64,000 nucleotides of DNA, from contig OZ251238.1 in the NCBI GenBank assembly GCA_965240325.2, forward strand, positions 558,001-622,000, in the 5' to 3' direction. Shown piece after piece: positions 10,301-46,030 of the stretch; within the stretch, counting starts at the first letter, position 1, and every line of letters begins with the position of its first letter. The notes under the pieces were generated by a model. That model was not told where the DNA came from. It saw only the letters and a list, made by a program, of their open reading frames with translations, and did no database searches. This stretch comes from Rebecca billardiae RCC1528 (lineage: Eukaryota > Protista > Haptophyta). The translations under genes and the position numbers were made by a program.

Positions 10301-13223
10301 GGCACCGCAGCGGGCACCGCAGTGCGCGCAGGTGCCGCAGTGGGCGCAGGCGGAGGTGCCGCAGTGGGCGCAGGCGCCGGTGCCGCAGTGGGCGCAGGCG
10401 GAGGACCGGGATGCGCCTCCTCAGGGCAGCAGGCCTGCGCTCCGCCGCGCACGCTCCGAGCCGGCGGACGGCGCGTGCGCGCGCTGGCGCGTCGAGGGCG
10501 GCGAGGCCGGCGCGTGTGCGCAGCGCCAGGGCGGCACGCGCGCGGTAGGCGGCGCGTGTGTCGCTGGCGGCGCGTGCGGCGGCCGTGCCGAGGTGCGCAT
10601 GGAGGGCTTGGCGGATGCACTGCTTGCACTCGAGGCGGAGGCGGAGGCGGAGGCGGAGGGAGGGCCGTCGAGCGCGGCGGCGCACGCCGCGCTCACTCAC
10701 GGCCCCGCGGCCGACCCCGAACACGGCCCACGCCGAGCCGGCCCGCTCGCGCGCGCGCGCGCCGTGCGCGCGCAGGTGGCCGCGCTGAGTGAGCGCAAGG
10801 GCCGGCTGCTGTGCCGAGAGCCGGGCGCGGCGCTCAGCTTGCTGCTGGCCGCGCTCGTGGCCACCGCGCCGCTGCGGCTGGCAGGCAGCGGCGCGGACGC
10901 GCCCGCGGGCGCGCGCGCGCACGCGACGCTCGACCACGCCGGCGCGCACGCCGGCGCGGCCGAGCTCTCAGCCGGCTGGGCGTTTGCGCGCGCGGACGCG
11001 AGCGCGGCGGCACTTGCGAATCGGACGCGCGCCGCGCTGCGCGACGCGTGCGCGGCGCGCGGCCGCGGCGGCGGCGGCGGTGGGGTGTGCGTCGGGCTCA
11101 CGCCGGAAGGGGGCGTGCCGGGCCGCACCCCGGAGCTCGCCCACTGGCTCGCCACGCGCACGCCGCCGCTCCCACGGGCGTCCCTCGCGATCGATGGCGC
11201 CATCACCCACCGTCGGTGGTCGGATGCGCGCGGGTGGAACTTTCACGGAAGTGGCGCGCCCGCGCCGCGCCGCGCCGTCGCGGGCGCCGACGCGGGCGCC
11301 GACGCGGCCTCGTCGGCCGATGTGGACGTGCACGGCACCGTACTGCTCACGGGCGCGCCGTGCGCGGCGGCGGGTGGCGCGGCCGAGGTGCTGGTGACGG
11401 CCCTCGTGCGCGCTGCCGGCGCGCACGCGTGCACGGCGCAGAGCCGGGCTGCCGACGATCGCCCAGCGTGCGTGCGGCCGATGGCGCGTGCGCCGCCCGG
11501 GCGCCGCGCCGCCAATGCCACCGCCACGCCGGCGACTGCCGCGGCGGCCTCGCGCGAGGCGGCGTCCGCCTCGCGCTGCGCCGCGCCCGGCGCGCGCGCA
11601 GACCGCCCGCCGGGCCTCGGCGCGCTGCGCAGCTACCTGCTCCTCGCCCTGAGCATGCACGCGGCGCGCGCCGCGGACGTGGCGTGCCGCGAGCGTGCGG
11701 CGCGCGTGCGCGCGCAGCTGTGTGCGCACGGCGCGACCGAGCTGGCGCTTGGGCTCGCGGAGCTCGCGGTCGAGGGCGCGCTGGGCGCGCTGGGCGCGGG
11801 CGCGCTCGTCGCGCTCGTCGGCGCCACCCGCGGCGCGCTGCGCGCCGCGCCCGTCCGCGCCGCGGCCGCTTTCGGCCTAGCGTCCACAGTGCAGGGTCTT
11901 GCGGGCGCGCGCCTCAGCGGCGGGCGCGTGGCCGTGGCGGTGGCGTGGGCGGCGGTGCTCGCCCCGAGCTGCGCGCTCGCGCTGGAGCAGGGCGTGGCGC
12001 TCGGCATGCCCGCGCCGCGCGCGGCGGCGGCGGCTCCGGGCGTGCTGCTGCGCCTCGCCCTGCCGCACGTCTCGGTGCTGCGTGCCCTGAGACCAATGTG
12101 TGCCGACGCCGCCGCCGCCTCCGCCGCCGCCGCCGCCGCCGAGCCCGCTGCCAAGCTGGCAGGCGGCGGCGTGGGCGCGCGCGCGGCGGCACACGGGGCT
12201 TGGCCGACGAGCGGAGACGATGGCGGCTGGGCCGAGTGCGGCTGGCTCCTCGCGGCCGCCCTCGTGTACGCGGCGCTGCTCTGCGCCCCCCACCCGCCGC
12301 CACTGCTCCGGCCGCGCGCCGCGGCCGAGGCCGAGCACCTTCGACCGCCGCCCGTCGGCGCGCCGCCGGCTGCGCTTGAGCTGCGAGGGGTGAGCAAGCA
12401 ATTTGCGCCGGCGCGCTGGTGCCCGCGTGGCGGCGGCGGCCGCGCCGGGGCCGAGGCGCGCCTGGCCGTCTCGGACGCGCACCTCCGCGCGCACGCGCAC
12501 GACCTCCTCGTGCTGCGCGGGCCCAACGGCGCGGGCAAGTCGACACTACTGGCGGTGGCCGCGGGCGCGGTGTGGCCGACGCGCGGCAGCGCGCGCGTGC
12601 TCGGCGGCCGCACGCTCGGCTACTGCCCTCAGGAGGCGGCGCTCGATGGGCTGCTGAGTGCGCGGGAGGCGGTGCGGCTGGCCGCGGCCCTGCGCACCGC
12701 CGCCGCCGGCCGCGCACCGCACCCCGCGACCTCACTCGATCGGCAGTGCGCGGACGCCCTCGCCCTGGTCGGCCTGGGCGCGCACGCCGAGCAGAGCGCG
12801 CGCACGGCCCGGCTGTCAGCCGCGCGCCGACGGCGCGTGGCGCTCGCGTGCGCGCTCGTGGCGCGGCCGGGCGTGCTTCTGCTCGACGAGCCGTGCGCGG
12901 CGCTCGACGTGCGCACGCGCGCGCGCGTCACGGCCGAGCTCCAGCGCGCCGCCGCAGCGGGCGCGGCGGTGGTGCTCGCGTCGCACGCCGGCGGCGCGCC
13001 CGCGCGCGCCGCCGCCGCCGAGCGACGCGGCAGCGCCTGCTGTGTGCGGCACGGGGAGGGCGGCAGCATCGCTGCCGAGGCGACGTCGTCGGCCGCTGCG
13101 GTCGCGGGCGGCCTCCATCCCCGCGTGTGCTGGCGGGAGGTGGCGATGCACGCCGGGAGGCTGCTGAGCTCCGATGATGATGCCTCCGAGACCGAGGCGG
13201 ACGACGAGCATCAGCAGCAGTGA
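7386..13223 (+). CDS. ABCA-subfamily full-size ABC transporter, highly divergent
   Basis: Two NBDs: GAAGAGKS/LSGGQRRRL/LLALDEP and GPNGAGKST/GYCPQ/LSAARRRRV/LLLDEP. ABCA-like N-terminal RALVRKEW...; unrecognised in-frame introns are possible. Confidence 0.75.
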   Translation: MRAETTASKRLWQGHPSSSPPARPDGARARAAWAHVAVCRALVRKEWREMVRPASSFALEAVLSATLLVLLLASTWQPAAASAAAHADRPGAAVALRTIATVGARWRSPRASFAVAPCNASAPAMGEVLADVMAELRATPPFFDVPCYPTRAALLAAGSGSAPGSAELVGGAVLRWARPGARAEGARAPSGCCEADVAYELVLSPRTRATPSAEPPFSLWATHAVESALENARLRARSDARPRRAAEGSPGAARASAARTAAREPPHAPVPRAGRVRVDLELGSLAALAGSGASPAPPSEQRSGPAQLRALLVPLALNLLLGIRLRAAYAHAAAERAGGAHSRRGALRALGVGPCAYVPTVLGASAARALCVAAPFLAAAMLLTAQRGGGGGGVGALGAGGWRAGFRLGSALLAGSLATHAAALALACAATASARAGASPGAVYQLYVAAAIGGAPLAHAGRAAGAAGAAGVLLLPPCALHAALLGSAQGAPASAIPWGVALSALLAHTAVWCALAIRADGAHGAAAARAYPTEPGAAVCARELVGPAGCARAADGTPAVSGVSLDVRAGQIVAIVGAAGAGKSSLLRMLSRQAAPAGGALRTCADGADDGAGGRCCRAARGRGAVRAAAHRLGACDQDEWLWGQLSAAEHVELACALRDASARACGEAEAHTEAEPTACGRARPAAAAEDGWCASARPAAIGAAPTRGCVAMALAQVGLGGSLAHARAATLSGGQRRRLSLAMAVARAPRLLALDEPLRGLDGTARARVCALLRRAVAGRGARGGGGGGGAAVLWATHEHGFAELLAHAFIALGPSGAPIATPAPRVRVLAQLGAGARARFDLCALGAAPHATAPRGAGAWKACERARRRAEHVLREHGAALACVCVQADTAAGRAPALLLRAPPTLSGERALRAAVRALRAARVDARAARRARCGAVPAPSVRGLPPPPPRGTASYPPAVAGHAAASQPTAPQRAPQCAQVPQWAQAEVPQWAQAPVPQWAQAEDRDAPPQGSRPALRRARSEPADGACARWRVEGGEAGACAQRQGGTRAVGGACVAGGACGGRAEVRMEGLADALLALEAEAEAEAEGGPSSAAAHAALTHGPAADPEHGPRRAGPLARARAVRAQVAALSERKGRLLCREPGAALSLLLAALVATAPLRLAGSGADAPAGARAHATLDHAGAHAGAAELSAGWAFARADASAAALANRTRAALRDACAARGRGGGGGGVCVGLTPEGGVPGRTPELAHWLATRTPPLPRASLAIDGAITHRRWSDARGWNFHGSGAPAPRRAVAGADAGADAASSADVDVHGTVLLTGAPCAAAGGAAEVLVTALVRAAGAHACTAQSRAADDRPACVRPMARAPPGRRAANATATPATAAAASREAASASRCAAPGARADRPPGLGALRSYLLLALSMHAARAADVACRERAARVRAQLCAHGATELALGLAELAVEGALGALGAGALVALVGATRGALRAAPVRAAAAFGLASTVQGLAGARLSGGRVAVAVAWAAVLAPSCALALEQGVALGMPAPRAAAAAPGVLLRLALPHVSVLRALRPMCADAAAASAAAAAAEPAAKLAGGGVGARAAAHGAWPTSGDDGGWAECGWLLAAALVYAALLCAPHPPPLLRPRAAAEAEHLRPPPVGAPPAALELRGVSKQFAPARWCPRGGGGRAGAEARLAVSDAHLRAHAHDLLVLRGPNGAGKSTLLAVAAGAVWPTRGSARVLGGRTLGYCPQEAALDGLLSAREAVRLAAALRTAAAGRAPHPATSLDRQCADALALVGLGAHAEQSARTARLSAARRRRVALACALVARPGVLLLDEPCAALDVRTRARVTAELQRAAAAGAAVVLASHAGGAPARAAAAERRGSACCVRHGEGGSIAAEATSSAAAVAGGLHPRVCWREVAMHAGRLLSSDDDASETEADDEHQQQ

Positions 13224-25897: not shown

Positions 25898-27376
25898 ATG
25901 ACGACGACGACGCTCGAGCAAGCCGTGCAGACGTGCCTCGAGCTGGACGCGATCGTCGCGCGGCTGCGGCAGAGCCTGCTCGCGAGCGTCGCCTCCGCGC
26001 GCGACGCCGAGCCCTCGCGCTCCAGCTGGCAGGTCGACCGGGGCGGCGAGGAGCTGCAGGACTGCGCGCTGCAGGTCGCGCTGCTCCTGGGCGGCCGCGC
26101 GCCGACGGACGAGTGCAAGCGCGAGCTGATCGGCGGCCTGCGCGCGCACGACGGGGACGAGCGCGTCGCCTCGTTCCTGCAGCGCTGGGCGCAGCTCCTG
26201 CTCGTCACCGGCGCGGTCGCCACAGGAAATGACGCGCCACGGCTCGCCTACGCAGACTGGTACCGCGGCGCGCCGGGCGAGTGCTGCCACATGCCGTCGC
26301 TCGCGTCGCTGCGCGACGGCGAGGACGGGCTCGAGCGCTTCGTGCTGCACGGCTGGCTCCCGCGCACGCCGCCCATCCGCCGCGACTCGCGCGTCACCGC
26401 GCTCGGCTCGTGCTTTGCTGACGAGGTGCGGATCTGGCTGCGCGAGCGAGGCATCGCTGTGAACGCGGACTTCCGGACCGCCGCCGGCTCGTACCCGCAC
26501 GTGGAGGACGCGTTCGTGCCGCTGCTGCAGTGCGCGGCGGGCCTCGTCAACACCTTCGTCCTGCGCCAGCAGTTCGAGTGGGCGCTCGACGGCGCCGACT
26601 TTGACGACGATCTGTGGCACGGCGCTCGCGGCTCGGTCACCGTGCCGACTGAGCTCGCGCGCCGGCGCACGCGCGAGCTGTTCGAGCGCACGGACGTGTT
26701 CGTGATCACGCTCGGGCTGAGCGAGGTGTGGTTCAAGCGGCGCGCCGACGCCGAGGGCGAGGGCGAGGGGCCGGGCCGTGAAGCCGCGCACAACGTCCTC
26801 TGGCGCGCCGTGCCCGCGCGCGCCTACTCGCGCGAGACGCACGGCTTCCGCGTCGCGAGCGTCGCAGAGAACGTGGCGAACCTGCGCGCGGTGCTGCGGC
26901 TCGTGTGGCGAGCGCAGCCGCACGCGACGGTGCTGCTCACGCTCTCGCCGATCCCGCTCACCGCCACCTTCCGCGGCGTCTCGTGCGTCACCGCCAACGC
27001 CGTGTCCAAGGCGAGCCTGCGCGCGGCCATCGACGAGTGCATGCGCGAGCGCGAGCACGCCGACGCGTGCGCGCGCGGCCAGCTGCTGTACTGGCCCGCG
27101 TATGAGATGATCAAGGAGGGTGTGGTCGAGCCGTACCTGCCAGACGGGCGGCACGTGCGCCCCGAGGTTGTCCAGCGCGTGCTCGCGCTCTTCGGCAAGC
27201 ACTACGTCGTGCAGCACAGCCGCGGCGACGTGCGAGCTGCGCCAGCCTCGGCCAATAAGGACGACACGATGGCGACGTCGGACGACGAGAGCGACGATGC
27301 CGAGGTCACGCGTGACCAGCGAGGAGGGCGCAACCTGTCGTCCACGCGCTCGCGCTCACACTCGCGCTCGCCTTGA
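25898..27376 (+). CDS. GSCFA-domain protein (SGNH hydrolase-like)
   Basis: Motifs LGSCFA, FVITLGLSEVW, LTLSPIPL.ATF, AN.VSKA.LRAA, YWPAYE and DGRHV. Confidence 0.88.
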   Translation: MTTTTLEQAVQTCLELDAIVARLRQSLLASVASARDAEPSRSSWQVDRGGEELQDCALQVALLLGGRAPTDECKRELIGGLRAHDGDERVASFLQRWAQLLLVTGAVATGNDAPRLAYADWYRGAPGECCHMPSLASLRDGEDGLERFVLHGWLPRTPPIRRDSRVTALGSCFADEVRIWLRERGIAVNADFRTAAGSYPHVEDAFVPLLQCAAGLVNTFVLRQQFEWALDGADFDDDLWHGARGSVTVPTELARRRTRELFERTDVFVITLGLSEVWFKRRADAEGEGEGPGREAAHNVLWRAVPARAYSRETHGFRVASVAENVANLRAVLRLVWRAQPHATVLLTLSPIPLTATFRGVSCVTANAVSKASLRAAIDECMREREHADACARGQLLYWPAYEMIKEGVVEPYLPDGRHVRPEVVQRVLALFGKHYVVQHSRGDVRAAPASANKDDTMATSDDESDDAEVTRDQRGGRNLSSTRSRSHSRSP

Positions 27377-27510
27377 CGAATATGGCGCGTGGCAGCAATG
27401 CGCGGCCACCTGACTGCCGCGCTGCCGGCCATCAAATGACAAATATCAATATCAGCGCGCTGCCTGACAGTAGTGCGCTGGCGGCCGCCGGTATTATTAT
27501 TCGTCGTCAG

Positions 27511-27885
27511 CAGGGCTCCAAGACGGTACACCGGACACCGGTAAATACCGTACCGGTGCGTACCGGTGCGTACCGGTATGCACCGCCACAAACTGCCGCG
27601 CACCGGTGAGAGTCTCCGGGAGGGGTCGTGTGCGCCCGGAGTCCGGACCTGGACCACAGCACCCGCGCGAGTGCGGAGTACGCGGAGCTGTCACTTGTCA
27701 GTGTCCGAGGTCGGAGTCACTGCTGGCACTCTCAGGGGAGGCGAATACGCCGCCGATTTCGTCCAATAATTGGGCTGATGTTTCTATCAGTAAATAGGCC
27801 CAAAAATTTTCGTCGCCCCCGGGGGAGACACCCCCCGGACCCCCCCGCGGTGCGCGCACCGGTGTACCGGTACACCGGCGCGGTC
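27511..27885. mobile_element. Possible hAT-like MITE remnant with ACCGGT subterminal repeats
   Basis: Starts with CAGGGC; clustered TACCGGT repeats at both ends; no clear partner TIR. Confidence 0.35.
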
Positions 27886-29276
27886 GGCCACGGGCCGCCC
27901 TGCTCCGGGCCCGCCGACCGAATGCGCTGCGCGCCGCCGCGACGCTGTTAGCCGCGGTCGCGGAGTCGCCTGGACGCCTGATGAATAACTCATCATTATA
28001 ATTATATGATCATGATGCCGCGCCTGGCCTCGCCAAATGTTCCGATTTCAATCGCGCAGCAGTCTGCAGTGAGCGTGGTGAACGCAGTGACATCCCACAT
28101 GTGAGCGGTGCCGGGCTCCTGCGCCTTAGTGCCGCCGCCGACGGCGCTGCCAGCGCGACAGCGAGGATGCATGCAGCCGAGCACTGGCTGGTGCAAACAG
28201 CCACCTACCACGGGCAGCTCGGAGATGAGCGTGAGCGCTGCCGAAACGCAACTACCGCGCGCGCCACGACGGCGCGGCACTAGCTGATGCAGGCCGTACT
28301 GCCGGCACTGCTTCTGCGATCATGCGCCACGGTCGCAGATGACTGCGTGAGCAGCAAGCGGGAGGCGGGTCCGGAGGCACGTGCAGGCGCGCTCGCAGCC
28401 AAGGCCGGTTGGTCGGCCATCCGCCATCGTGCGGGCCACGTCACCACTCACCTCCGATCCGGATGTGGCCCAGTCCGGACGTCACGCGATCCGGGAAGAC
28501 GAATACGATTCGCTCGTAACGAACCGTTACACTAAAGTCACGGCCAGGCTCACGTCCCGTCCACCGATTACATATAGGCAGAATTGGCGGACGCGGTCTT
28601 TTTCTGACCGCCGCAATAGACCTCTCTATGCGATCTCAAAAACTCGAAACTCGGTCTCCTCCGGCCCTGAAAATCGTCCCCCGTCCCTTTTTCCAAGATC
28701 AAAGATCTTTTTGAAACGTGGTTAGTGCCCGCAGTGCGGGCTCCACGCTGCGCGCTCCGCCCTGCACCGCGGGCCATTAATAAATGGCGGGCCGTATTAT
28801 TATTACGCGGCGCGAAGTGCCGCGAACGCGGCATGAAAAAAAATCCCCCGCATCCCCACTGGGCGGAAGTGCGGACGGGTTACGGTAACGCCGAAAATCG
28901 ATTTCTTTACTGTGTATATTGCTGCGGCGCGCAGGGCCAGGGTGATTGGCGGCAGTAACAACTATAACTGATGACTGCATGCGCTGATTCTGATGAGTCT
29001 TGAGTGAGTGATCACTGCTGATCGTGAGTGATGTAACTAGCTCATACAGCCCCGCAGGTAGATCGCGGGTGTCGTCCGTGTCGTGGACCAGTTCAGCCCC
29101 AGTTAATGCGGGCCCAGCCAGCACCCCGCTCAGCGCTCCCCGCCCGCGGCGGGCTGCGGCGGGCTGCGCGCGGCGACGAGCGCGGTGCGCGGTGCGCCGC
29201 ATCACGTCCCCGCGTCAGCGTGTGCTTCCGCGCCGCCGGGCCGCGCGGTGCAGGCTTTGGCGGCACGCGTGCAGGG

Positions 29277-30689
29277 TTAGGCGGCGAACGTGCTGCGGGC
29301 TGCGTCGGCCAGCTGGAGCAGAGCGCCCTCAAGGTCGATGATCTGATTCTCATCAGCACCGCGGAAGGTACAGATCTCAGGCTCGTGGTCCATGAAGACG
29401 GTTTCCTGTCCTGCCTCCACGGCCGCCTTGACCACCACATCGACGCCGGCGGCTTTGATCTCCGTCAAGATCAGGTCAGCCGCTGCCGCCGCCGCTTGCT
29501 TCATGTCGGCCGCCAAGGGCCCGCGCTTGGAAAGGTTGGGCGAGAAGCCGATGATCTTGCACGCGTAGTTCTCCTCCAGGTAGGGGATCATGCTGGCCTT
29601 GATGCACGCGGAAGGGGCAGTGCACACCAGAAAGATCCGTTTGCCCGACAGCGAGCCCAAGGGCCGCGGGCGCAGCCGGGTCAAGGCGACAGGGAGCTCG
29701 GGGGCCACTGAGCGGATGGCGTCCAGGAGTCGATTGCAGTCCGCCTCGTTGACAGCTTCCGGCTCGCAGCCGGTGACGATGGCGAGGTCAGCCATGCCGA
29801 GCTTGTAGGGTCCAAAGTAGCCGCTGAGCGCGGTGAGATCCTGGCTGGCCGGGATCAAGATGACCCGGTGTGAGGCCTGCACTGGCGGGAGGCTGGCGCC
29901 GCTGCCCTCCAAGAGCACGAAGGCCTCGGAACGGGCGTTGGCCATCTCGACCCCGACCCCCATGTTGGAGAGGAGCACCTCCCCTGCGATACCGCCCGCA
30001 CAGCGGCGGCAGCCGATGGTGGTCACCCGGGCTGTGTAGGCGTCCTCCCAGTGGTCAGAGCAGGCGTGCTTGCCCTGCTCAGACTGCGCCAAAAGATACT
30101 CCGGGCAAAGCTCCAAGGTGCGGCCCTCGACCACCTCAGGGGTGGCCGGGCCCCCGCGGCCCATCGTGATGATCAAGGGATCGTAGCAGTGGTCCGCCAG
30201 GAGCCGGGCGATGTAGCCGGTCACAGCGGTCTTGCCCACCCGCTTGGCGGTACCGAAGACCGCGAGGGCCGGCTTGTTGAGGCGGTGAGGGAAACGGGGC
30301 GGTTCGAAGCTGAAACCGGCTCCAAGGTAACGCGCGCCCGCAGCCAACGCGAGGCTGGCCAGGCGCATGCGGCCCGGGTAAGTGACGATGGGCTCATCGG
30401 AGAGGTCCATCACGGCATCGACCTGCAGCTCAGCCAACGTCGTCCGCAGCAAGGCAAACGGGAGGCCCGGCTGGTCCTTCTCGTAGTACACAGGACAGCC
30501 CCACAGCTCGGCCAGCTTGTCCAGCTCCGCAACCTTCTCGCTCCCGCCCAAAAAGAGCGCGCCCACAAGATCAAAATCGTTCCGCATGTCTTCGAGGGCA
30601 TCCTTGGTCACCGCCGGATAGTGCTCCCCATCCACCAACGCCAGAGCACGTCCTCCCATGCCCACGATCCCGGGCACGCCCATCGGCAT
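29277..30689 (-). CDS. cpgS: Cyclic 2,3-diphosphoglycerate synthetase homolog, intronless
   Basis: Motifs LVDGEHYP, FLGGSEK, DLSDEP, GTAKRVGKTAV, MGRGGP..PEV, HACSDHWEDA, GCRRCAGG, EGSGA and TEIKAAGVDVV match archaeal/bacterial cDPGS. The start could instead be 30659. Confidence 0.9.
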   Translation of the reverse strand: MPMGVPGIVGMGGRALALVDGEHYPAVTKDALEDMRNDFDLVGALFLGGSEKVAELDKLAELWGCPVYYEKDQPGLPFALLRTTLAELQVDAVMDLSDEPIVTYPGRMRLASLALAAGARYLGAGFSFEPPRFPHRLNKPALAVFGTAKRVGKTAVTGYIARLLADHCYDPLIITMGRGGPATPEVVEGRTLELCPEYLLAQSEQGKHACSDHWEDAYTARVTTIGCRRCAGGIAGEVLLSNMGVGVEMANARSEAFVLLEGSGASLPPVQASHRVILIPASQDLTALSGYFGPYKLGMADLAIVTGCEPEAVNEADCNRLLDAIRSVAPELPVALTRLRPRPLGSLSGKRIFLVCTAPSACIKASMIPYLEENYACKIIGFSPNLSKRGPLAADMKQAAAAAADLILTEIKAAGVDVVVKAAVEAGQETVFMDHEPEICTFRGADENQIIDLEGALLQLADAARSTFAA

Positions 30690-31144
30690 CTCGACGGGTA
30701 GTTTCTTTGTTCGGCGCGCGAGTTGGTCTGATTCCCGGCGCTGCGGGATCCCAGCAGGATGAGGCACCGCTGCACGCAAATCATATGGGGGGATTTACGA
30801 TTTTTATCGTAAGTTTCGTTTCGATCCCACTTCGGAATTGAAGCCAATCTGAAATCAGTGTATCATGTTGGACCCCCAGGCCTGTACCCATAATTACTTA
30901 CGGCCCGCCATAAACAATAATAACCGAGTTCTGCGAATCGGCTTTTTAGGCCTATCGGCTAGGTGGGCGGGTGCGGGCCCACTGCCTTTATCGGCGCAGT
31001 GCGCAATTGCGCGTCGCAACGTCGCACAGCCAGTGCCGTCGTGCGCTCGCAGGTGCCCAACAGGAAGTTCGGGGCACTCAAGGCGGCCGAGGCGGATCGT
31101 GCCGGCCTCGCCGAGCGCAGCCTCGCTGATCTGTCGGTTGCGCC

Positions 31145-32614
31145 ATGGCACCGACTGCGGCTGGCGACGACCGCGGTCGCTCCGAAGCAGCCATCATCGC
31201 CAGCGCCTGCGTTCTCTGTATGGTCGGGCCATTCTCGTTGCATCTGTTCGTTCCGGCGCTCCCAGCGATGGCGGAGGCGCTTGGTGGGGGCTCTGTCAGC
31301 GTCACTCAGCTCACAATGAGCGCCTACACCATCGCCTATGGTAGTGCCCACCTGCCCGCAGGCGCGGCGTCGGACGTGTACGGCCGCACACCGGTGCTCG
31401 CCTTTGGTATTGGCCTCTACGCGCTCGCTTCGCTGGCGTGCCCCATGGTGGCGACGGCGAGGCAGCTGATAGTGGCGCGCTTCTTCCACGGCGCAGGTGC
31501 CGCGGCCATCGCCATCACCGGGCCCTCGTCGTTGCGCGACCTTCTCGAGTCACCCGCTTTGCGGCAGCGCTCGATGGCGCGCGTGGTCACGGCACGCTCG
31601 GCGGCCACGTTCACCGCTCCCGCGATCGGCTCGCTCGTGGCGGGCGTCCTCGGGTGGCGCTGGGTTCTTGGACTGTATACACTGGTTGGCGCATTGGTTG
31701 TGGCCGCTGCGGTCGTCATCGTGCCACCCCTGCGCGCCAGCCATGCTCGGAAGCTCGCAGGCGGGACCGGCGCCGATGGACAGACGGCTGCGGGCGGCAC
31801 GATGGCGCTTGGCCAGGGCGCTCCGCGCAGATTCACGTGCGCAGCCATCGTTCGCCCGTTCTGCGCCGTGCTCGCTGACCGCACCTTCGTGATGTACGTG
31901 CTCGCCGACTCGTTCGTCCTCTCCGTGGGCCAGACCTACTCGCAAGCGGCGAGCTACGTCTTCCAGATCTACTACGGCCTCGGGCTTGGCGTGTACGCAG
32001 TCTGGATGACACTCGTGCCCCTCTGTGTGATGGGAGGCGTCCAGCTGACGGTGGCGGCGAGGCGCGTGCTCCGCGGTGGCAATGAGCGCGTCGTCAGGGC
32101 GTCCCTGCTGGCGACCATCGGCAGCGAGGCTGTGCTCCTCGCGCTCTTGCTCGTGCTGCCGCTGCACGCCGCCGCGGCATGGTTCGCATTTGGGTCGCTT
32201 CATTTGTTTTTCCAGGGCATGCGCGGCATGCTCACCACGGCGGCGCAGACCATGATCGTCGAGAACAGCCCTGGCAACACAGGCAGCGCGCTCGCGTTGC
32301 TCTTCTTCGCGCGCTACGGGCTGCTCACTTTCTCTGTGTACGCGATCGGCGCTCTGTACGACAGCGACTGGTGCACGGTGGGCGCGCCTGTGCCAACGGC
32401 TTGCTTTTTTCTTGGCACTCTCGTGCTGGGCCTGGTGTCATTCGAGTGCTTTCACCCGCGCGGGCTGGCGGACCACAGCGCCGCACCGGAGGCCGCCGCA
32501 CCGGAGGCCGCCGCGCCGGAGGCCGCCGCGCCGGAGGCCGCCGCGCCGGAGGCCGCCGCGCCGGAGGCCGCCGCGCCGTCGGTCTACTCTATAACTACTA
32601 CTAGCGCAGTCTAA
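31145..32614 (+). CDS. MFS transporter, Bcr/CflA (DHA1) drug-resistance family
   Basis: Motifs LFVPALPAMA, QLTMSAY, G..SDVYGRTPVL, LIVARFFHG and APAIG...GWRW; about 12 TM helices; C-terminal (APEAA)n. Confidence 0.88.
   Translation: MAPTAAGDDRGRSEAAIIASACVLCMVGPFSLHLFVPALPAMAEALGGGSVSVTQLTMSAYTIAYGSAHLPAGAASDVYGRTPVLAFGIGLYALASLACPMVATARQLIVARFFHGAGAAAIAITGPSSLRDLLESPALRQRSMARVVTARSAATFTAPAIGSLVAGVLGWRWVLGLYTLVGALVVAAAVVIVPPLRASHARKLAGGTGADGQTAAGGTMALGQGAPRRFTCAAIVRPFCAVLADRTFVMYVLADSFVLSVGQTYSQAASYVFQIYYGLGLGVYAVWMTLVPLCVMGGVQLTVAARRVLRGGNERVVRASLLATIGSEAVLLALLLVLPLHAAAAWFAFGSLHLFFQGMRGMLTTAAQTMIVENSPGNTGSALALLFFARYGLLTFSVYAIGALYDSDWCTVGAPVPTACFFLGTLVLGLVSFECFHPRGLADHSAAPEAAAPEAAAPEAAAPEAAAPEAAAPEAAAPSVYSITTTSAV
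32480..32578 (+). repeat. 15-bp coding minisatellite (APEAA x6)
   Basis: GCGCCGGAGGCCGCC tandem units. Confidence 0.95.
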
Positions 32615-34579
32615 TACTACTAGCTTACTATACTGTCACAAGCGGGGCGGACGCCAACCTGATGGCTGGCCATGCCATCGGAGGTAGTAGCCTGGACGCC
32701 ACATAGTACATACGCCGTCAAGAGCCCATAATGGCATAATCCATATGGGAAGTAATTCTGGTGAACACAGCTTTAAACAATTTTAATTCGTGAGAAAGCC
32801 CTGGGAGACCCAGCTCCGACCCCCTTTAATTGGGTGTCACCTACTGCTGTCCCAAGTAATACCGGAGTAGGAATACGAACAATGGGGCCTCAAACGTTTT
32901 TTGATTAGGCACGCCTCGGGAATCGAGAACGCACTTGGTTAATTTTTGCGCCAATTAGGGCACGCCTCGGGAATCGAAGCGCATGTGGTTAATTTTTGCG
33001 CTCGCCGCATAGAGATGTCGTTGCGATTCCCACAAATCTGGCGGCGATCTTAGCGGTACCCCCTTACCCAGTTCATACCGCCTATACAATACGGTAACGG
33101 TACGGACCTGGCGCGCCTCGCCGTGCACCCGCACGAGGCCACGCGCCCCGGCGCGCGCGCGCCCGCGGCCTCGCACCCAAACTGCGAGACGCCGGCAGCG
33201 CTCGACGCGTGCCTCGCGCAGCGCGGCTGGCGAGCACGCCGAACGGCGTGGACGAGGCGCGCAACGCGGAGCGCCGCGAGGGTCACGCCGCGCGTCGAGC
33301 CGAACCGCGCGCGGCGCGCGAGGCCGCCGCGACCGACGCGGTCGCGCGCCATCTGGGCGTCCGGCGGCAGCAGCGCGCACGACGTGCGGACTGCAGTTGC
33401 TGCACGACTACCACGCGTCGATGGCCGACGCGCGCACGCACGGCGTGATCGGTGCGGAATCGAGAACGCACGTCGTTACCTTTTTGAGCGCGCGCCATAG
33501 GGATGTCGTTGCGATTCCCACCTATTTGTTGACGCTTTTCTACGACCATCCCGGCTCCCCAAGTCGAGGAACCGCGACGCACGTGTGCTTTCGCCGCCGC
33601 GCCGCGTGCGCTCGGCACACACGATTGAGTATGACGAACGAGCGCGCCGCTGAAGGAGGCGAAGGTCGCGCGCGACACGCAGAATGGCGCTTAGCCGGCG
33701 TGGCTCGACGACGCTGCCGGCACTCGCGCTCGCACACACGTGCGCGACCGAGGAACAGCTCCGCGGGCCTCGGCCGAACCCAGCGCCGGATGCCATCGTC
33801 GGCGTCGAGAGGAACTGCGCCGATCTGGCGGAGATCCAGCGGCACGTGGCGGCGATCAAGCAGCCGCAACCGCATCAGATGACGTGCACGAGCGGCCTCA
33901 TGGAGAAGCTCGTACCACAAGCCTACCATAAGCCACCCGCTCGCCGACTTGCCCGACTGACTACTCGCGGAGTTAACTCCGCCCTGGCTCGTCATCAACG
34001 GGCGCGGCCTTCGAGCCGACACCCGCGCCGCCCGCGGCTCGCGGCGCCATCGCGAAGGTGCGTGCCCGCCGGCGCGAGCTGCACAACACAACATGCACAC
34101 CGACGTGAGCCGCTCGTACCACGTCGTGCCCGACGGGCCGTGCTCAGCGACGGCTGCAGGCCAGTCTACTCGCCGTGCAGTCGGTTGTGCCCTGCCGGCC
34201 TGCGCCACTCGCCCCGCGCCTACAGCCGGTGGGCCATCCGCGGTGCGTGCCGTTGCCGTGCCGTCGTGCCCGAGCGGCCGTGCGCAGCGACGACCGCATC
34301 GACGCGCGCCTCGCCGTGCGCCTCGGTGGGCCTTGCAGAAGTGCCGCGCTGCCGCGCCTCGGGCTTAATCGCACGCGCGACTGCGGCGCGCCACCGGATG
34401 ATACCGTCAGTCAGCGCTGAACGGCCAACTCGTCTCATCGTCGTCGGGTCTGCCGGCCCTGGCAAGCTTCTCCGTCGCGTCCTAGACGCGCTGTGTTCGA
34501 CCAGCCCCACCGGGAAAAGGCCGCTAGGCCCCCGCTGTTTAGACAGGTTGCACAGAAAAATTCTGGAACCCACGACTGG

Positions 34580-36127: not shown

Positions 36128-36403
36128 CCAAGGGCGGTGGCGGCCGCCGGTATTATTATTCGTCGCGTCAGCAGCTAAATCTTCTGCGCGCTAATAATAT
36201 TTATATTAAGACTGCGCGGCTACCGCGCCGCCGTCGTAAGTGACGACGAGCATCGCGTCATCGTCATACGGTAGGTAGTAATATATACATACTACGCCGT
36301 CCTGTCTCGCGGATCCGAGTCGGAGTCTCGCGCCGACAGCATCGGACCCGGGGTGCTGCCTGACGACGATTGATGCTGTGATGCATATATATGCTGCATA
36401 TCG

Positions 36404-37294: not shown

Positions 37295-38789
37295 GCTTGA
37301 AATTGAGGGCTCCGGAGGCGTTGCCGCCCGCCCGGCCGTGCGTCCGAAACCAGGAAATGAAGCAACGGGCAACGGAAATGCGCCATGAGTTTTTTCGCGC
37401 GCGAATTCTGAAAAACTGTGCCCTGGCGGGCGGGGGGGTCGGCGGGCCGTGCCAGTGCTGTCGCAATGTATCCTTTGCGGGTTCGCGTCTGCTTTCCACA
37501 TTCGCTCGTGGCCGTGGGTGACGGACAGTCGAGTGCAAGGACCTGTGACCATGAATTGTTGGCTCTCCGACGTGTACACACGTCTCACGGTCTGTACTCT
37601 TAGTAGTATGCGCATCACTCCATCAGCGAGGCCCACGCCCACCAGGGAATCACGAGCGCGTTGACGTTCACGCGGTCGTCGCTCTTCGCCTCTTCGACAG
37701 GTCTGGCGCTCGCGTGCTCGGCGGCACGAGGAGCTGTTGGTTGTGCGCGCGCGCGCGCACAGCGACAGCGTGTGCCACTCGCGATCGAGAGTGGGCAAGC
37801 GCTGCTCACGCGGGCACACGAGTCGCAGCGCATCCGTCACCGGCGTGACGACTTCCGCCTCGTCCCGCAGCGCCTGCGCCATGGACGAGGATGGCGCGGC
37901 GATGTTGCATGCTCGACGTTTCATCTCTGTGTGGATGGCATCACGGGCTTGTCTGTGTCGCGCTGCGGCGAGGGTCGCCAACTCGCGAAGACGCGGTTGC
38001 TGCCACGGCGACAGACCCGGGAGGTGCCTCCGCTGCGCGTCGTACGCCGTTGGCGCTGCGCTTCCGTCGCATTGGTCACCGTCGACGCCATGCAGGCCGG
38101 ACGTGGGCTTCGGCTGAGGGACCGGACCGCGAGCAATGACTGAGTCCGGTGCGCGGATTCCGGCGATCGAGTTCAGCAGGCCGCGCCAAATCTTGCGTCG
38201 CGTGCGATGGCGCTTCCCGCCCGCGAGACGCCTCGTGATGAGGGCTTTCTCGCACCGAGCCCGACGCGCGACGGTGGATCGCGCGAGGCGGTCATCGTGC
38301 GCAGCGCATGATGCTATGGCCGGTGCGAGCTTTCGACGTGCACGTCGGGCGAGGATCGCCCCAGGTCGCACGATCGTGTCGACGCGCCGAGCGTACCGCT
38401 CCAAACGCGTCGATTTAGCCCCCGTTCGACCTGCACGCGAGACGACGAGGGCAGCAAACGCGAATCGGGCGAAAACCCCTCTAGGGAATCCTCGCGCGAT
38501 GTCCGCGCCGGCGTTGGATTTGGCGCGCGCGGCCCATGCGCTCCGCGCCAGGCGCCAGATGGTTTTCGGCCGAGCGTCCCCAGTGGGAGCTGCGAGGGCG
38601 CCCGGTAGTGAGCGAAGCGATTTTCTTTTCTTGGCGAGGCGGCGATTTTCTTTTTTTCTTTTCTTTTTCTTATCTTTTTCCCGGGCACTACAAGGGGCGG
38701 ACCTACGGCCCGCCATATCGACGATGAGCAAGAACAGCAGAGCTATCTCCGCCGCGCGACGAGCGCCGAACACGGCGCCATCACCGGGC

Positions 38790-41731
38790 ATGTGGGCCGT
38801 AGCGCAGGCGCGCGGCCTGAGGCTGCTCCTGGCGCTTGCCGCCGCGCCCTACCGGGCTCTCGCGGCGCGCACCTCGAGCTCGTGCACCGCACCCGCGCTC
38901 GGCTCGGCCGAGCTCGCCGACTTCAACCACGGGCTGTTTGGCTGGCACGCGGGCAACAGCAGCCTGTGGGAGTGGAGCTCCGGCTGTGCGCAGACGGCCG
39001 TGCCCTGCGAGGCGGCGTCGTCGCTCGACGGCTTCATGCTCGCCGTCAGCCCGCACGTCCCGCTCACCTCGCCGGCCATCCACGGCTCGTGCCTCTCGTT
39101 CTCGTTCTTCACGCGCGCGAGCGCCCAGCTCGTCGTCGAGATGCAGTCCGGCCCGTCGGCGCCGTGGAAGCGCGTGCTCACGCTCGTGGCGAAGAAGGGG
39201 TCGGCGTGGGAGCGGTACGACGGCCTCGCGCTCCCAGACGAGCCCGTACGCATCCGGATGAGCGCGCAGAGCGAGGCAGGCAAGCCGTGGGTCCCGCGCT
39301 CGGTCGGGCTGGATGACGTGGCCATGGCAGCGGCGCCGGCGCCGGCGGCGCGCGGCGCCGGCTCAACGGACGAGCACGCAGTGCTCGGCGCTGATGGGTG
39401 GAGCGCCGCGACCGTCCCGCCCTCGCCCGTCGGCGTCGACTTCTCCGCCGTCTTCTCGCGCCAGCCCATCCCGCTGCCGCGCGTCACCTCCGCCCTCGCC
39501 GAGCGCGGCATCCGGCGCGCCAAGGTCTTCCAGTACGACGGGCAGCTGCTCGACGCGATGGCGGCGGCGGGCGTGACGGACGTGGCGGTGGGGATCCCCA
39601 ACTTCGAGCTGCACGCGCTCGCGCTCTCGCCCACGCACGCGGACGACGTGGTCGCGCGCATGGAGCCGCACCGCGCCATGATCTCGTACGTCATCGTGGG
39701 CAACGAGCCGCTCGCCGATTGGTGGGCTGACGAGTTCTCGGCCCACATGCCGCTTGCCGTGCGCAACGTGCGCGCGGCGCTGCGCGCGCGCGGCTGGCAC
39801 GCGCGCGCGACGGTGGTGCTGCAGTTCGGCGTGCTCGAGCGCACGTGGCCGCCCCAGGACGCGCGCTTCGACCCGTCCCAGACCGACCTGATGCAGACCG
39901 TGCTGCCGGAGCTGCTCGAGGCGCGCTCGGCGCTCTTTGTGAACCTGTACCCGTTCCAGGCGTGGCGACAGGACCCGGCCAGGGTGCCGCTCACGTACGC
40001 GCAGTTTGACGGCTCGCCGTGCGCGTCCGACGGCACGCGCTGCTACGCGAGCCTGCTCGACGCGATGCTCGACGCGACGTGGTGCGCGCCGCGCCGTGCG
40101 TGCGCACCGCCGCGCCCGCGCGCCCGCGCTGCTCCTGCGGCGCGCGCGCTCTGGGCGGCGCGAGGCGAACGCGAGGCGCGCGTGTGCGGACGCTGTGTCC
40201 TCACGCACGCCGTGTGCGCGCGCGGCGCGGCAGGCACGCGCTGGACAAGCTGGGCATGGCGACGCGCTTACCCGTCGTGATCGGCGAGATCGGCTGGCCC
40301 TCGGGCGGCCAGTCCGCGGGCGCCACGCCGCACGACGCGTGCGTCTTCGTGAACAGGCTGATTGCGCACGCGGCGCACGCGCGCACGCCTCTCGGCCTCC
40401 GAGTGCCCTCCCTGTTCCTCTTCGAGCTCACGGACGAGTACGACAAGAGCACGGGCGTGGGCTTGCTCGGCGCGTCCGAGCGGCACTACGGGCTGCTCAC
40501 GCAGACGGGCGACCCGAAGTACGGCATCGACTGGGCGCCTGCCACGATCGAGGACGGCGCGCTCGCGGCCGCGCGCTGCCCGCCGCGCGAGGCGTGCTCG
40601 CCGCACGCGGACGACCAGTGTGGCGCGCACGCGTCCGAGCGCAGCCAGTGCTTCGAGATGGGGACGGCGTTCTGCGCGCCGTTCGACAACGCGACGGACG
40701 CGCAGATCGGCCTGGCGCTCGCGTGGCTCTGCGCGCCCGCCGACAGCGAGGGCGGCGGCGGCGGCGTGGACTGCCTCGAGCTCGAGCGCGGCTGGCCGCA
40801 GTGCGCCGTCGCGTCGGCGCGTGCGCGCGCCGCGTGGGCGGCGACGCTGTATGCGCGCGACCACGGCGCGGCGGCGTGCTCGTTCGGCGCGGCGTTCACG
40901 TACTCGTCCTGGATCCCGCGTGGGCTCGCCGACGAGCTGCACGCCGCGCGCTGCCCGCTCGGCGTGTGCGAGGCGACCGCGCCCGCGCGCAAGCCTCCGC
41001 CCAAGCCGGAGGACACGACGGGAGGCGCTTGCCTGCACGCGAGCGACTGTGGCGGCCTCAGGTCCTCGATCAAGTCGGTGCTGGTCGGCCCGACGTGCGA
41101 CACGCGGCCGCTCGCCGCCGACGCGGCGGGCTCGTGCCAGGCGCGGCACAACGCCTCCGAGCACCAGCTCCTCTCCGCGATCAACTGGGCGTGCACCGTC
41201 GGGCGCGTCGACTGCACAAGCATGGCCGCCCTGTGCGCGAGCGCGCCGCTCGGCGAGCGAGCCACGTGGGTCTTCACGCGGTTCGCGACGATGCACGGCG
41301 GCCAGTGCTTCTTCTCCGGCGCGGCGCAGCTCTCGCGCGTGCCGCTCGCGCGCGCGGCGCCGCAGTGCAACATCGGCGAATGCCGCATCCCCGCGGAGAA
41401 CCTGTGGCAGTCGCCGCTCTTCGCCGGGCCGCTGATGGCCGCGATGCTCGCGTACGCAGCGCTGCGACTGCGCGCCTCGCGACGCGTCGCGGCCGAGTGG
41501 CACGCGGCGGAGCGCGAGCCCAAGGCGACGGGCGCGGGGGCTGCAGCCGCAGGCGCGTCCGCGTCCGCGGCGGCGGAGGCGGGCAGGGCAGCGGCAGCTG
41601 GCGGCGACACGGCGGCGGGCGGCATAGCGCTCCCGCCGGGGCAGCCGGCCTCACGAGCCAGCTTGCCACACTTCTCCTCGCGCTCCACCACGGACGGGGG
41701 CGGCGCGGGCGGCGCGGCAACACTCTACTGA
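38790..41731 (+). CDS. GH17 beta-1,3-glucanase: signal peptide, MAM-like, GH17, X8, X8, TM; 2 exons
   Basis: Motifs VIVGNEP, FVNLYPF, VVIGEIGWPS, FLFELTDE..K and ERHYGL; intron 40082-40233; two Cys-rich X8-like repeats. Confidence 0.88.
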
Positions 41732-43976: not shown

Positions 43977-46030
43977 ATGATGAAAGCCGGCGAGCAGATC
44001 GCCAAGGTGGCAGGCAAGAAGATCGTCGTCATTGGCGCCGTCGCGGGCGGCGCCTCCGCCGCAGCGCGCGCGCGCCGCCTCGACGAGCATGCGACGATCA
44101 CGATGATTGAGAAAGCGGGCGACCCGTCCATCGCGAACTGCGGCATGCCGTACTGGCTGGTGCGCGCGCGCGCCTTCGCGCGTGCGTGATCGCTCGTGGG
44201 GCCTAGCCCTCACGACGCGCCGCCCCGCGCTCCTCGCCCACCTCCACCCGCAGGGCGGCGAGATCGAGGAGCGCAGCAAGCTGAACGTGCAGACTCCCGC
44301 GTCGCTCAAGGCGCGGCTCAACCTCGACGTCAAGGTGCGCACCGAGGCGATCGCGATCGACAAGGCCGCAAAGTCCGTGCGCGTGCGCGACCTCAAGTCG
44401 GGCACCGAGTACGACGAGCCGTACGACGAGCTGGTCCTCTCGTTGGGCGCGAAGCCGTTCCTGCCGCCCATCCCGGGCATCGAGCGCGCCGGCAACCTCT
44501 CGCTGCGCAACCTGGACGACATGGACCAGATCGACGCGTGGATCAAGGCGCGGGGCGCGACGAGCGCCGTCGTGTGCGGCGGCGGCTTCATCGGCGTCGA
44601 GATGGCCGAGCAGCTGCACCGGCGCGGGCTGCGCGTCACCCTGGTCGAGGCGCTGCCGCAGCTGATGGCGCCGTTCGACCCGGAGATTGCGTCGATGCTC
44701 ACGCAGGAGCTCGAGCGCAACGGCGTGAGCGTGCGGCTCGGCGCGGCGATCAAGGGGTTCGAGGAGTCGCAGTCGGGCGCGAAGGGCTCGGACGTGCTCC
44801 TCGGCGCGGGCGACGGCGCCCCGCTCGAGCGCGTGCCCGCAGACCTCGTGATCCTCGGCCTGGGCGTGCGCGCCGACTCGTCGCTCGCCGAGCGCGCGGG
44901 CCTCAAGATCAACGCGCGCGGCGGGATCGTCGTGGACGCGAACATGCGCACGTCCGAGCCGCACATCTGGGCGGTGGGCGATGCCATCGAGGTGGCCAAC
45001 CCCATCGGCGGCGGGCAGTGGATGGTCGCGCTCGCCGGCCCGGCGAACCGGCAGGGCCGGCTGTGCGCTGACTCCATCTACGGCCTGGCGAGCGCCGAGC
45101 GCGCGGCCGAGCGCGCGTACCGCGGCACGTACGGCACGTCGGCGGTGCGCGTCTTCGAGCTCGACGCGGCATCGACGGGGCTGAACGAGCGCGGCGCGAA
45201 GCTCGCGGGCAAGCCGTACGACTGCGTGCACCTCCACCCCAACTCGCACGCGGGCTACTTCCCAGGCGCGCAGACGGTCTCGCTCAAGATCCTCTTCGAC
45301 ACGTCGGACGGGCCCGAGCGCGGCCGGCTGCTCGGCGCGCAGGCGGTGGGCAAGGACGGCGTGGACAAGCGCATCGACGTGCTCTCGACGGCGCTGCAGG
45401 CGAAGATGACGGTCGACGACCTCGCCGCGCTCGAGCTGTGCTACGCGCCGCCCTTTGGCTCGGCCAAGGACCCCGTCAACTACGCCGGCATGATCGCGCA
45501 GGACATGCTGGACGGCCTCGTGCGCACGGTGCAGTGGACGGAGCTGCCCAAGCTGGCAGACGACCCGAGCGTGCTCGTGCTCGACGTGCGCTCGGAAAAA
45601 GAGATCGCCAAGAGCGGAGCGCTCGTGCCCAATGCCACCGTGATCCCGGTGGACGAGCTGCGCGCGCGATTGGGAGAGCTGCCGCGCGACAAGACGATCG
45701 TGACGTCGTGCCTCTCCGGGCAGGTGTGCGCTCCGCGCGCGCCGCGCCGGACTCAGCCCGTCCGCTCCGCGCGCCGCCATCCATCCCCGCCGTTGCCCCG
45801 TTGCTCACCAGTCCTCGCGGCCCTGCCCCTCGGCCCCGGCTCATCTGCGGGCGGGTGGCGGCGGTGCGCAGCGCGGGTACTACGCGGCGCGCGTGCTCAT
45901 GCAGAGCGGCTTTGAGCGCGTCCTGAACCTTGACGGCGCATACAAGACCTTCTCGCAGTCCGGCACTGTGATGAGCAAGCGCGCGCGTGGGGCCGACGGG
46001 CCGGCCTCACCGCAGGTGGGCGGAGCTTAG
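43977..46030 (+). CDS. CoA-disulfide reductase-rhodanese fusion (CoADR-RHD / Npsr-like); 3 exons
   Basis: Motifs GAVAGGASAAARARRL, SIANCGMPY, GGGFIGVEMAE, WAVGDA, LAGPANRQG, YAPPFGSAKDPVN; rhodanese LDVR...CLSGQ|RGY. Introns 44160-44253 and 45724-45871. Confidence 0.93.

Follow-up and report, generated by a model that had tools for sequence, protein, structure and literature searches.

The cpgS locus

The stretch examined here (the window) is a 64,000-nt segment of contig OZ251238.1 (positions 558,001 to 622,000 of the forward strand) from the assembly of the haptophyte Rebecca billardiae RCC1528 (GCA_965240325.2), and it contains an intact gene, cpgS, for a member of the cyclic 2,3-diphosphoglycerate (cDPG) synthetase (cDPGS) family. 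To our knowledge, cDPG, a heat- and salt-protective solute, has so far been reported only from prokaryotes. The window ranges from 60 to 81% GC, with long open reading frames (ORFs) on both strands, and the spacers between them, hundreds to thousands of bases long, are lower in GC. Its contents include an Rh-type ammonium transporter gene, whose nearest Atlas clusters are 99 to 100% eukaryotic, and two further genes that encode proteins with WD40 and GST domains, respectively.

The cpgS coding sequence, delimited by the ORF and by homology searches, occupies 29277..30689 on the minus strand (ATG at 30689, TAA at 29277-29279) and runs through 470 codons with no internal stop or frameshift, in keeping with its description as an uninterrupted, intronless ORF in a first-pass annotation of the window. 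Its product is 470 amino acids (aa) long, counting the first methionine; the gene call on a public short-read contig uses the second methionine and yields an otherwise identical protein of 468 aa (P0001). Upstream of the ATG, the frame is open only as far as a TTG at 30779, with no additional ATG, and the protein extends at most about 13 residues beyond the start point of its prokaryotic homologues. Barring an unseen upstream exon, these few residues leave no space for a signal or transit peptide, so the protein, having no N-terminal extension, is probably cytosolic.

Two domains make up the product. The N-terminal CpgS_N dimerisation domain (approximately residues 14 to 135; 30285..30650, minus strand), delimited by alignments, by a structural model, and by the PF27272 match precomputed on P0001, includes the residue pair E51/K52. 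The C-terminal P-loop kinase (LpxK-like) catalytic domain (approximately residues 136 to 470; 29280..30284, minus strand) contains the Walker A/P-loop GTAKRVGKT (residues 146 to 154; 30228..30254, minus strand) and the HACSDHWEDAY segment (residues 208 to 218; 30036..30068, minus strand). The eight motifs by which the first-pass annotation had recognized the family are all present, reading VDGEHY, DLSDEP, GTAKRVGKT, MGRGGP, HACSDHWEDA, GCRRCAGG, EGSG, and TEIKAA in this protein.

On its 5′ side, cpgS stands head-to-head with an intronless gene for a major facilitator superfamily (MFS) transporter of the Bcr/CflA-like type (31145..32614, plus strand), from which it is separated by a divergent intergenic region of 455 bp (30690..31144; GC, 0.585). 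On its 3′ side, a convergent region of 1.9 kb (27377..29276; GC, 0.632) separates it from a GSCFA-family gene, with which it is arranged tail-to-tail.

Membership in the cDPGS family

A phmmer search against all PDB sequences matched three chains, every one of them named cyclic 2,3-diphosphoglycerate synthetase, with E values of 3.6e-119 and 4.6e-119 to 8ORK and 8ORU, both of which are the Methanothermus fervidus enzyme. Residues 14 to 441 of the window protein align collinearly with residues 6 to 435 of 8ORK. An AlphaFold2 model built from a 16-sequence alignment (mean predicted local distance difference test score [pLDDT], 88.1; predicted template modeling score [pTM], 0.86) superimposes in Foldseek on the ligand-bound structure 8ORU with template modeling (TM) scores of 0.90/0.92 over 466 columns and 39% identity in the structural alignment. 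The runner-up fold is LpxK, which, at TM 0.35 to 0.40 and 12 to 14% identity (Foldseek probability, 1.0), falls far below cDPGS; the authors of the crystal structure obtained a matching ranking, with LpxK second (PMC10690619). LpxK-type atypical P-loop kinases share the fold of the C-terminal domain with the window protein but lack a CpgS_N domain and act on another substrate, and the window protein does not belong among them.

Conservation extends to the individual residues of the active site. All 80 of the 80 columns that are invariant in the 16-sequence family alignment are retained. In the numbering of the solved M. fervidus enzyme (PMC10690619), the substrate-contacting P-loop residues K149 and R150 are the counterparts of K145 and R146, and the Mg-contacting T154 is that of T150; the Mg-ligand aspartate D212 corresponds to D208; the trans-subunit substrate contacts E51/K52 correspond to E45/K46; and the nucleotide contacts E309, T357, and E410 correspond to E305, T353, and E404. 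The two proteins differ within the P-loop, which reads GTAKR in the window protein and GTGKR in the M. fervidus enzyme, GTAKR being common in the family, and they differ in host, one being found in a eukaryote and the other in a hyperthermophilic methanogen. Scans of the protein with Pfam-A and NCBIfam matched no family; this blank has no bearing on membership, because PF27272 (CpgS_N) is precomputed for the identical protein P0001. As the first-pass annotation had claimed, the ORF encodes a cDPGS-family protein; it is full length, shares the two-domain fold of the M. fervidus enzyme, and does not belong to a different P-loop family.

Composition and residence in the host

At 0.657, the GC content of cpgS lies slightly below that of neighbouring genes (0.67 to 0.81), whereas its three nearest prokaryotic homologues have GC contents of only 0.40 to 0.42. 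GC at third codon positions (GC3) is 0.834 in cpgS, 0.75 to 0.93 in neighbouring genes, and 0.30 to 0.34 in the three prokaryotic genes. In relative synonymous codon usage (RSCU), cpgS correlates with the pooled neighbour genes at 0.83, the lowest value among 14 ORFs (0.885 to 0.98 for the others, with MFS at 0.90), whereas the three prokaryotic genes yield correlations of -0.40 to -0.65 with the pooled host genes. Codons ending in T amount to 12% in cpgS, versus 3 to 6% in most neighbours. The lower GC content and more frequent T-ending codons that had been noticed by eye are therefore real but modest, and codon choice in cpgS is almost entirely that of the host. The accompanying suggestion that cpgS had been acquired relatively recently fares less well: a GC3 so far from that of its relatives, host-like codons, and a nearest identity of only 48 to 49% point instead to a long residence or to an unsampled donor.

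The ORF and all invariant residues have stayed intact through a rewriting of the synonymous sites, from which we infer long-term purifying selection on cpgS in its host. In our assessment, the locus probably represents a functional-looking cDPGS gene of prokaryotic derivation that was integrated into the nuclear genome of an alga-like eukaryote with GC-rich DNA and that purifying selection has long maintained there.

Proposed function and supply of substrate

In the pathway as described, 2-phosphoglycerate kinase (2PGK) phosphorylates 2-phosphoglycerate to 2,3-diphosphoglycerate (2,3-DPG), and the dimeric cDPGS, binding ATP/Mg2+ through its P-loop and 2,3-DPG through the P-loop Lys/Arg and a Glu/Lys pair of the partner subunit, closes over its substrates to form an intramolecular phosphoanhydride (PMC10690619, PMC12136491). 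Judging from the alignment and the structural model, the elements of this machinery are all present in the window protein, whose activity is a prediction. The algal enzyme would form the usual homodimer, use ATP/Mg2+, and close the intramolecular phosphoanhydride in 2,3-DPG to yield cDPG, which would serve the alga as an anionic compatible solute and/or as a store of phosphate and energy. Its substrate would come from an unlinked 2PGK or from a side activity of the bisphosphoglycerate-mutase type.

It is the supply of substrate that counts against a working pathway. No 2PGK is detectable by tblastn in the 64-kb window, as the first-pass annotation had also reported, and in this respect cpgS differs from the M. 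fervidus comparison system. Among the best 120 of 3407 matches to a 2PGK profile, none is attributable to the alga; the GC-rich matches in this set are long, ATP-cone-bearing proteins of 477 to 490 aa, of which several are assigned by name to Deinococcota. The cDPG pathway of the alga may, as such, be incomplete. A precedent for an enzyme of this pathway in a eukaryotic alga is found in the thermoacidophilic red alga Galdieria sulphuraria, in which a 2PGK has been annotated (PMC6504705), although 2PGK catalyses the other step of the pathway, and the passage matched in that paper makes no mention of cDPGS.

The lack of a nearby 2PGK also bears on a second interpretation, in which the gene is truly integrated but its product no longer makes cDPG, acting instead on another phosphorylated acid or on cDPG or 2,3-DPG imported from bacteria or prey, or persisting as an unexpressed relic. 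Adjacency of cpgS and 2PGK is common in prokaryotes (14 of 82 searched loci have 2PGK directly 3′ of cpgS). The missing operon partner favours such a change, as does the transporter gene positioned head-to-head with cpgS; the nearest bacterial relatives likewise have a transporter (EamA) alongside. However, the prokaryotic cpgS loci that were compared have no homologue of the MFS gene next to cpgS; the substrate, Mg, and nucleotide contacts that were compared are unchanged, as are the invariant columns; and an unexpressed relic would not stay intact while its synonymous sites shifted to host usage. We regard a loss of cDPG synthesis as unlikely. A further reading, which we advance only as a tentative proposal, is that the alga makes cDPG, either as an anionic osmolyte of the cytosol or to hold phosphate and energy in reserve, using a pathway derived from mesophilic marine prokaryotes and being the first eukaryote known to do so.

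Assembly support

In the assembly, cpgS is continuous with eukaryote-type genes within the window. Two independent short-read contigs from public runs (ERR14847148 and ERR14847151) match window positions 31184-28890 exactly; they cover cpgS together with spacer sequence on either side of it and run 40 nt into the MFS ORF. The case for integration is weakened by the extent of these contigs, which are 2.3 kb long and end in the bacterial-like MFS gene, such that the joins to unmistakably eukaryotic genes rest on the assembly. One public run yields a single exact 216-nt piece of cpgS along with repeat-like pieces and is uninformative with respect to both junctions and expression.

Such short bridges leave some room for an assembly artifact, in which cpgS, perhaps together with the MFS gene, belongs to a GC-rich associated bacterium and ended up in a eukaryotic scaffold through a wrong join; both genes are indeed intronless with best matches of a bacterial type. 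Indirect evidence counts against this: codon usage tracks that of the eukaryote-type neighbours (r of 0.83 for cpgS and 0.90 for MFS) and third positions are host-like; the spacing around cpgS, 455 bp on one side and 1.9 kb on the other, is unlike the packing of bacterial genes; an intergenic motif in the flanks of cpgS recurs beside other genes of the window; and the low-complexity (AAPEA)n tail at the end of the MFS gene is of a eukaryotic style. Moreover, the GC-rich bacteria that do carry cpgS, such as Rubrobacter and other Actinomycetota, occupy a different part of the phylogenetic tree than does the window protein. Contamination or chimerism is accordingly very improbable, and cpgS is probably a gene integrated into a eukaryotic chromosome.

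Relatives and origin

The closest non-self match to the window protein among 5.8 billion clustered proteins has 47 to 49% identity, and the top 120 matches are all prokaryotic or metagenomic. A HMMER scan of 1.84 billion representatives likewise peaked at 49% identity (P0011), with 866 representatives at an E value of ≤0.001, and contigs from JGI metagenomes contained nothing closer by single-protein patterns and nothing above 46% identity by a clade profile. No other eukaryotic cpgS or nearer homologue occurs among the best matches in these three collections; the best 120 to 150 matches were inspected in each search, and there may be remoter eukaryotic copies. As far as the inspected matches go, the gene is not widespread in eukaryotes. 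Pattern scans of IMG/VR recovered no relative of cpgS, and a giant virus was rejected as its vector for this reason.

We built two maximum-likelihood (ML) trees (LG+C20 PMSF) in which all rows besides the window protein are prokaryotic or metagenomic. In both, the window protein groups as the sister of P0006/P0011 (support, 100/98 and 100/96), and this group adjoins one formed by P0003, P0002, and P0007 (support, 97/89 and 87/84). P0006 is encoded on a Tara marine contig along with bacterial Pol I (PolA), PhoR/PhoB, HU, and c-type cytochromes, and its Pol I is similar to clusters from Pseudomonadota; P0002 and P0007 derive from metagenome-assembled genomes (MAGs) labelled Hodarchaeota and Promethearchaeota (Asgard). 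A cysteine-containing signature, HAC-SDHWEDA[YC] (with Cys210 in the window protein), is restricted to the window protein and these marine/Asgard relatives among 189 members with a readable motif, which backs the grouping independently of the tree.

Placed within these trees, cpgS is of prokaryotic ancestry, nested inside prokaryotic sequences. Together with the eukaryote-type gene surroundings and the lack of anything closer than 49% identity, this nesting makes horizontal acquisition the best reading, in agreement with the transfer proposed by the first-pass annotation, and the distribution of the gene among the inspected matches is patchy. The thermophilic archaeal source that the same annotation had implied is not favoured, in that the nearest relatives are encoded on mesophilic marine bacterial and Asgard contigs. 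Three results argue for caution regarding the exact placement: in the approximately unbiased (AU) test, a sister relation to the Asgard pair is not rejected (p 0.11), and placement with the Methanobacteriales/Methanopyri clade is narrowly not rejected (p 0.06), and both the window protein and its sister form long branches with skewed composition. Because of these two p values, we give the donor only as a member of the mesophilic marine bacterial/Asgard subclade, within which a bacterial donor is the favoured candidate.

Descent of cpgS from an Asgard-archaeal ancestor of eukaryotes, with loss in nearly all other lineages, might be read into the MAG labels of two of the five nearest relatives and into the AU result for an Asgard sister, but it is barely conceivable given an ML sister on a marine contig of bacterial context (100/96), the very many independent losses that would be needed to leave no other eukaryotic copy in the collections searched, and the intermingling of Asgard copies with copies on bacterial-looking contigs, which suggests transfer within marine communities.

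Marine EamA-CpgS-2PGK loci

The prokaryotic relatives closest to the window protein (47 to 49% identity; sister or near-sister in both trees) include copies on the marine metagenome contigs L083 and L084, as well as P0002/P0007. Both contigs are mesophilic, with 40 to 44% GC, and share the gene order EamA transporter-CpgS-2PGK (L083:5921-9092 and L084:7826-11109); L084, in which 2PGK occupies 10186-11109, is a Tara contig with clearly bacterial neighbours in a Pseudomonadota-like context. Related cpgS copies exist in the Asgard MAGs L085 and L086, and, in the latter, CpgS is followed by an AAA_18 P-loop gene that is probably a 2PGK. In contrast with these loci, in which 2PGK lies immediately 3′ of cpgS (L083, L084, and L086) and EamA lies upstream (L083 and L084), the window gene stands alone, has 66% GC with host codon usage, and faces an MFS gene rather than following an EamA transporter.

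Full-text literature searches returned no report of a eukaryotic cDPGS, consistent with the earlier statement that no described eukaryotic cDPG pathway was known. In the papers found (PMC10690619, PMC12136491), cDPG features solely as a solute of hyperthermophilic methanogens, and a mesophilic marine role seems unexplored. Together with the algal gene, the operons of marine bacteria and Asgard archaea suggest that such a role, for example in osmotic balance or phosphate storage, has been overlooked; if the alga does make cDPG, the shared EamA-CpgS-2PGK cluster would point to an unrecognised nonthermophilic function of this compound in the ocean. An intact and long-retained algal cpgS would extend the cDPG pathway to eukaryotes. 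The enzyme family is known, and what is new is its occurrence in a eukaryote. Single bacterial genes are common in algal genomes, and the transfer of cpgS is, for that reason, unsurprising in itself; it nonetheless offers a cleanly testable case of prokaryote-to-alga metabolic gene transfer, with one enzyme, one commercially available substrate, and one product visible by nuclear magnetic resonance.

Neighbouring genes and intergenic elements

The MFS gene has its best matches among bacterial Bcr/CflA-type transporters at approximately 31% identity, and no other record of its exact product was found. A 15-nt tandem repeat at 32464-32598 specifies the (AAPEA)x7 tail at the C terminus. The gene may represent a second old bacterial acquisition. 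The GSCFA-family protein on the other side of cpgS (25898-27376, plus strand) has a domain type that we take to be mainly bacterial. A third gene, at 44521-45915 (plus strand), encodes a protein with Pyr_redox_2, dimerisation, and rhodanese domains, presumably resembling CoA-disulfide reductases and with a domain combination that we assume to be found mainly in bacteria; its Pfam match begins at profile position 134, making an upstream exon likely.

The first-pass annotation had described the neighbours of cpgS as bearing introns, which is plausible for at least one of them but unproven. Within a gene for a GH17 glucanase that carries an X8 domain at its C terminus (38136-41731, plus strand), the Pfam match switches frame across a GC-rich stretch of ~120 to 150 nt (around 40082-40233) with GT/GC...AG candidates, and this break probably represents a "GCGCGC-run" type of intron. 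The most GC-rich part of the window (8 to 13 kb) coincides with an ORF for a 1945-aa ABC-type protein (7386-13223, plus strand; 81% GC), and many long antisense ORFs in that region are artefacts of composition. Rfam and tRNA scans of the 64-kb window returned nothing.

A short motif, ATGGCGGGCCGTA or GGC[CG]G[CG]C[CG]GTATTATTATT, recurs in AT-rich intergenic surroundings at 27483-27501, 28784-28804, and 36142-36160 on the plus strand and at 30899-30911 and 38704-38716 on the minus strand. Three exact 13-mers are observed, versus 0.09 expected. Two copies flank cpgS in inverted orientation, one in the region shared with the MFS gene (30899-30911) and one in the region shared with the GSCFA-family gene (28784-28804), and the remaining copies lie beside the GSCFA, GST, and GH17 genes. 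The motif may act as a promoter or terminator, or it may be what is left of a small mobile element. Transposon-like terminal repeats around cpgS were considered and discarded: the only candidate is this 13-nt motif, which also occurs elsewhere in the window. On the 3′ side of the MFS gene, the interval 32908-33540 contains local direct repeats with units of 19 to 59 nt, one pair being separated by ~488 nt. Read depth in one public run is raised at 28385-28778 and 32719-33300, both of which look like fragments of dispersed repeats.

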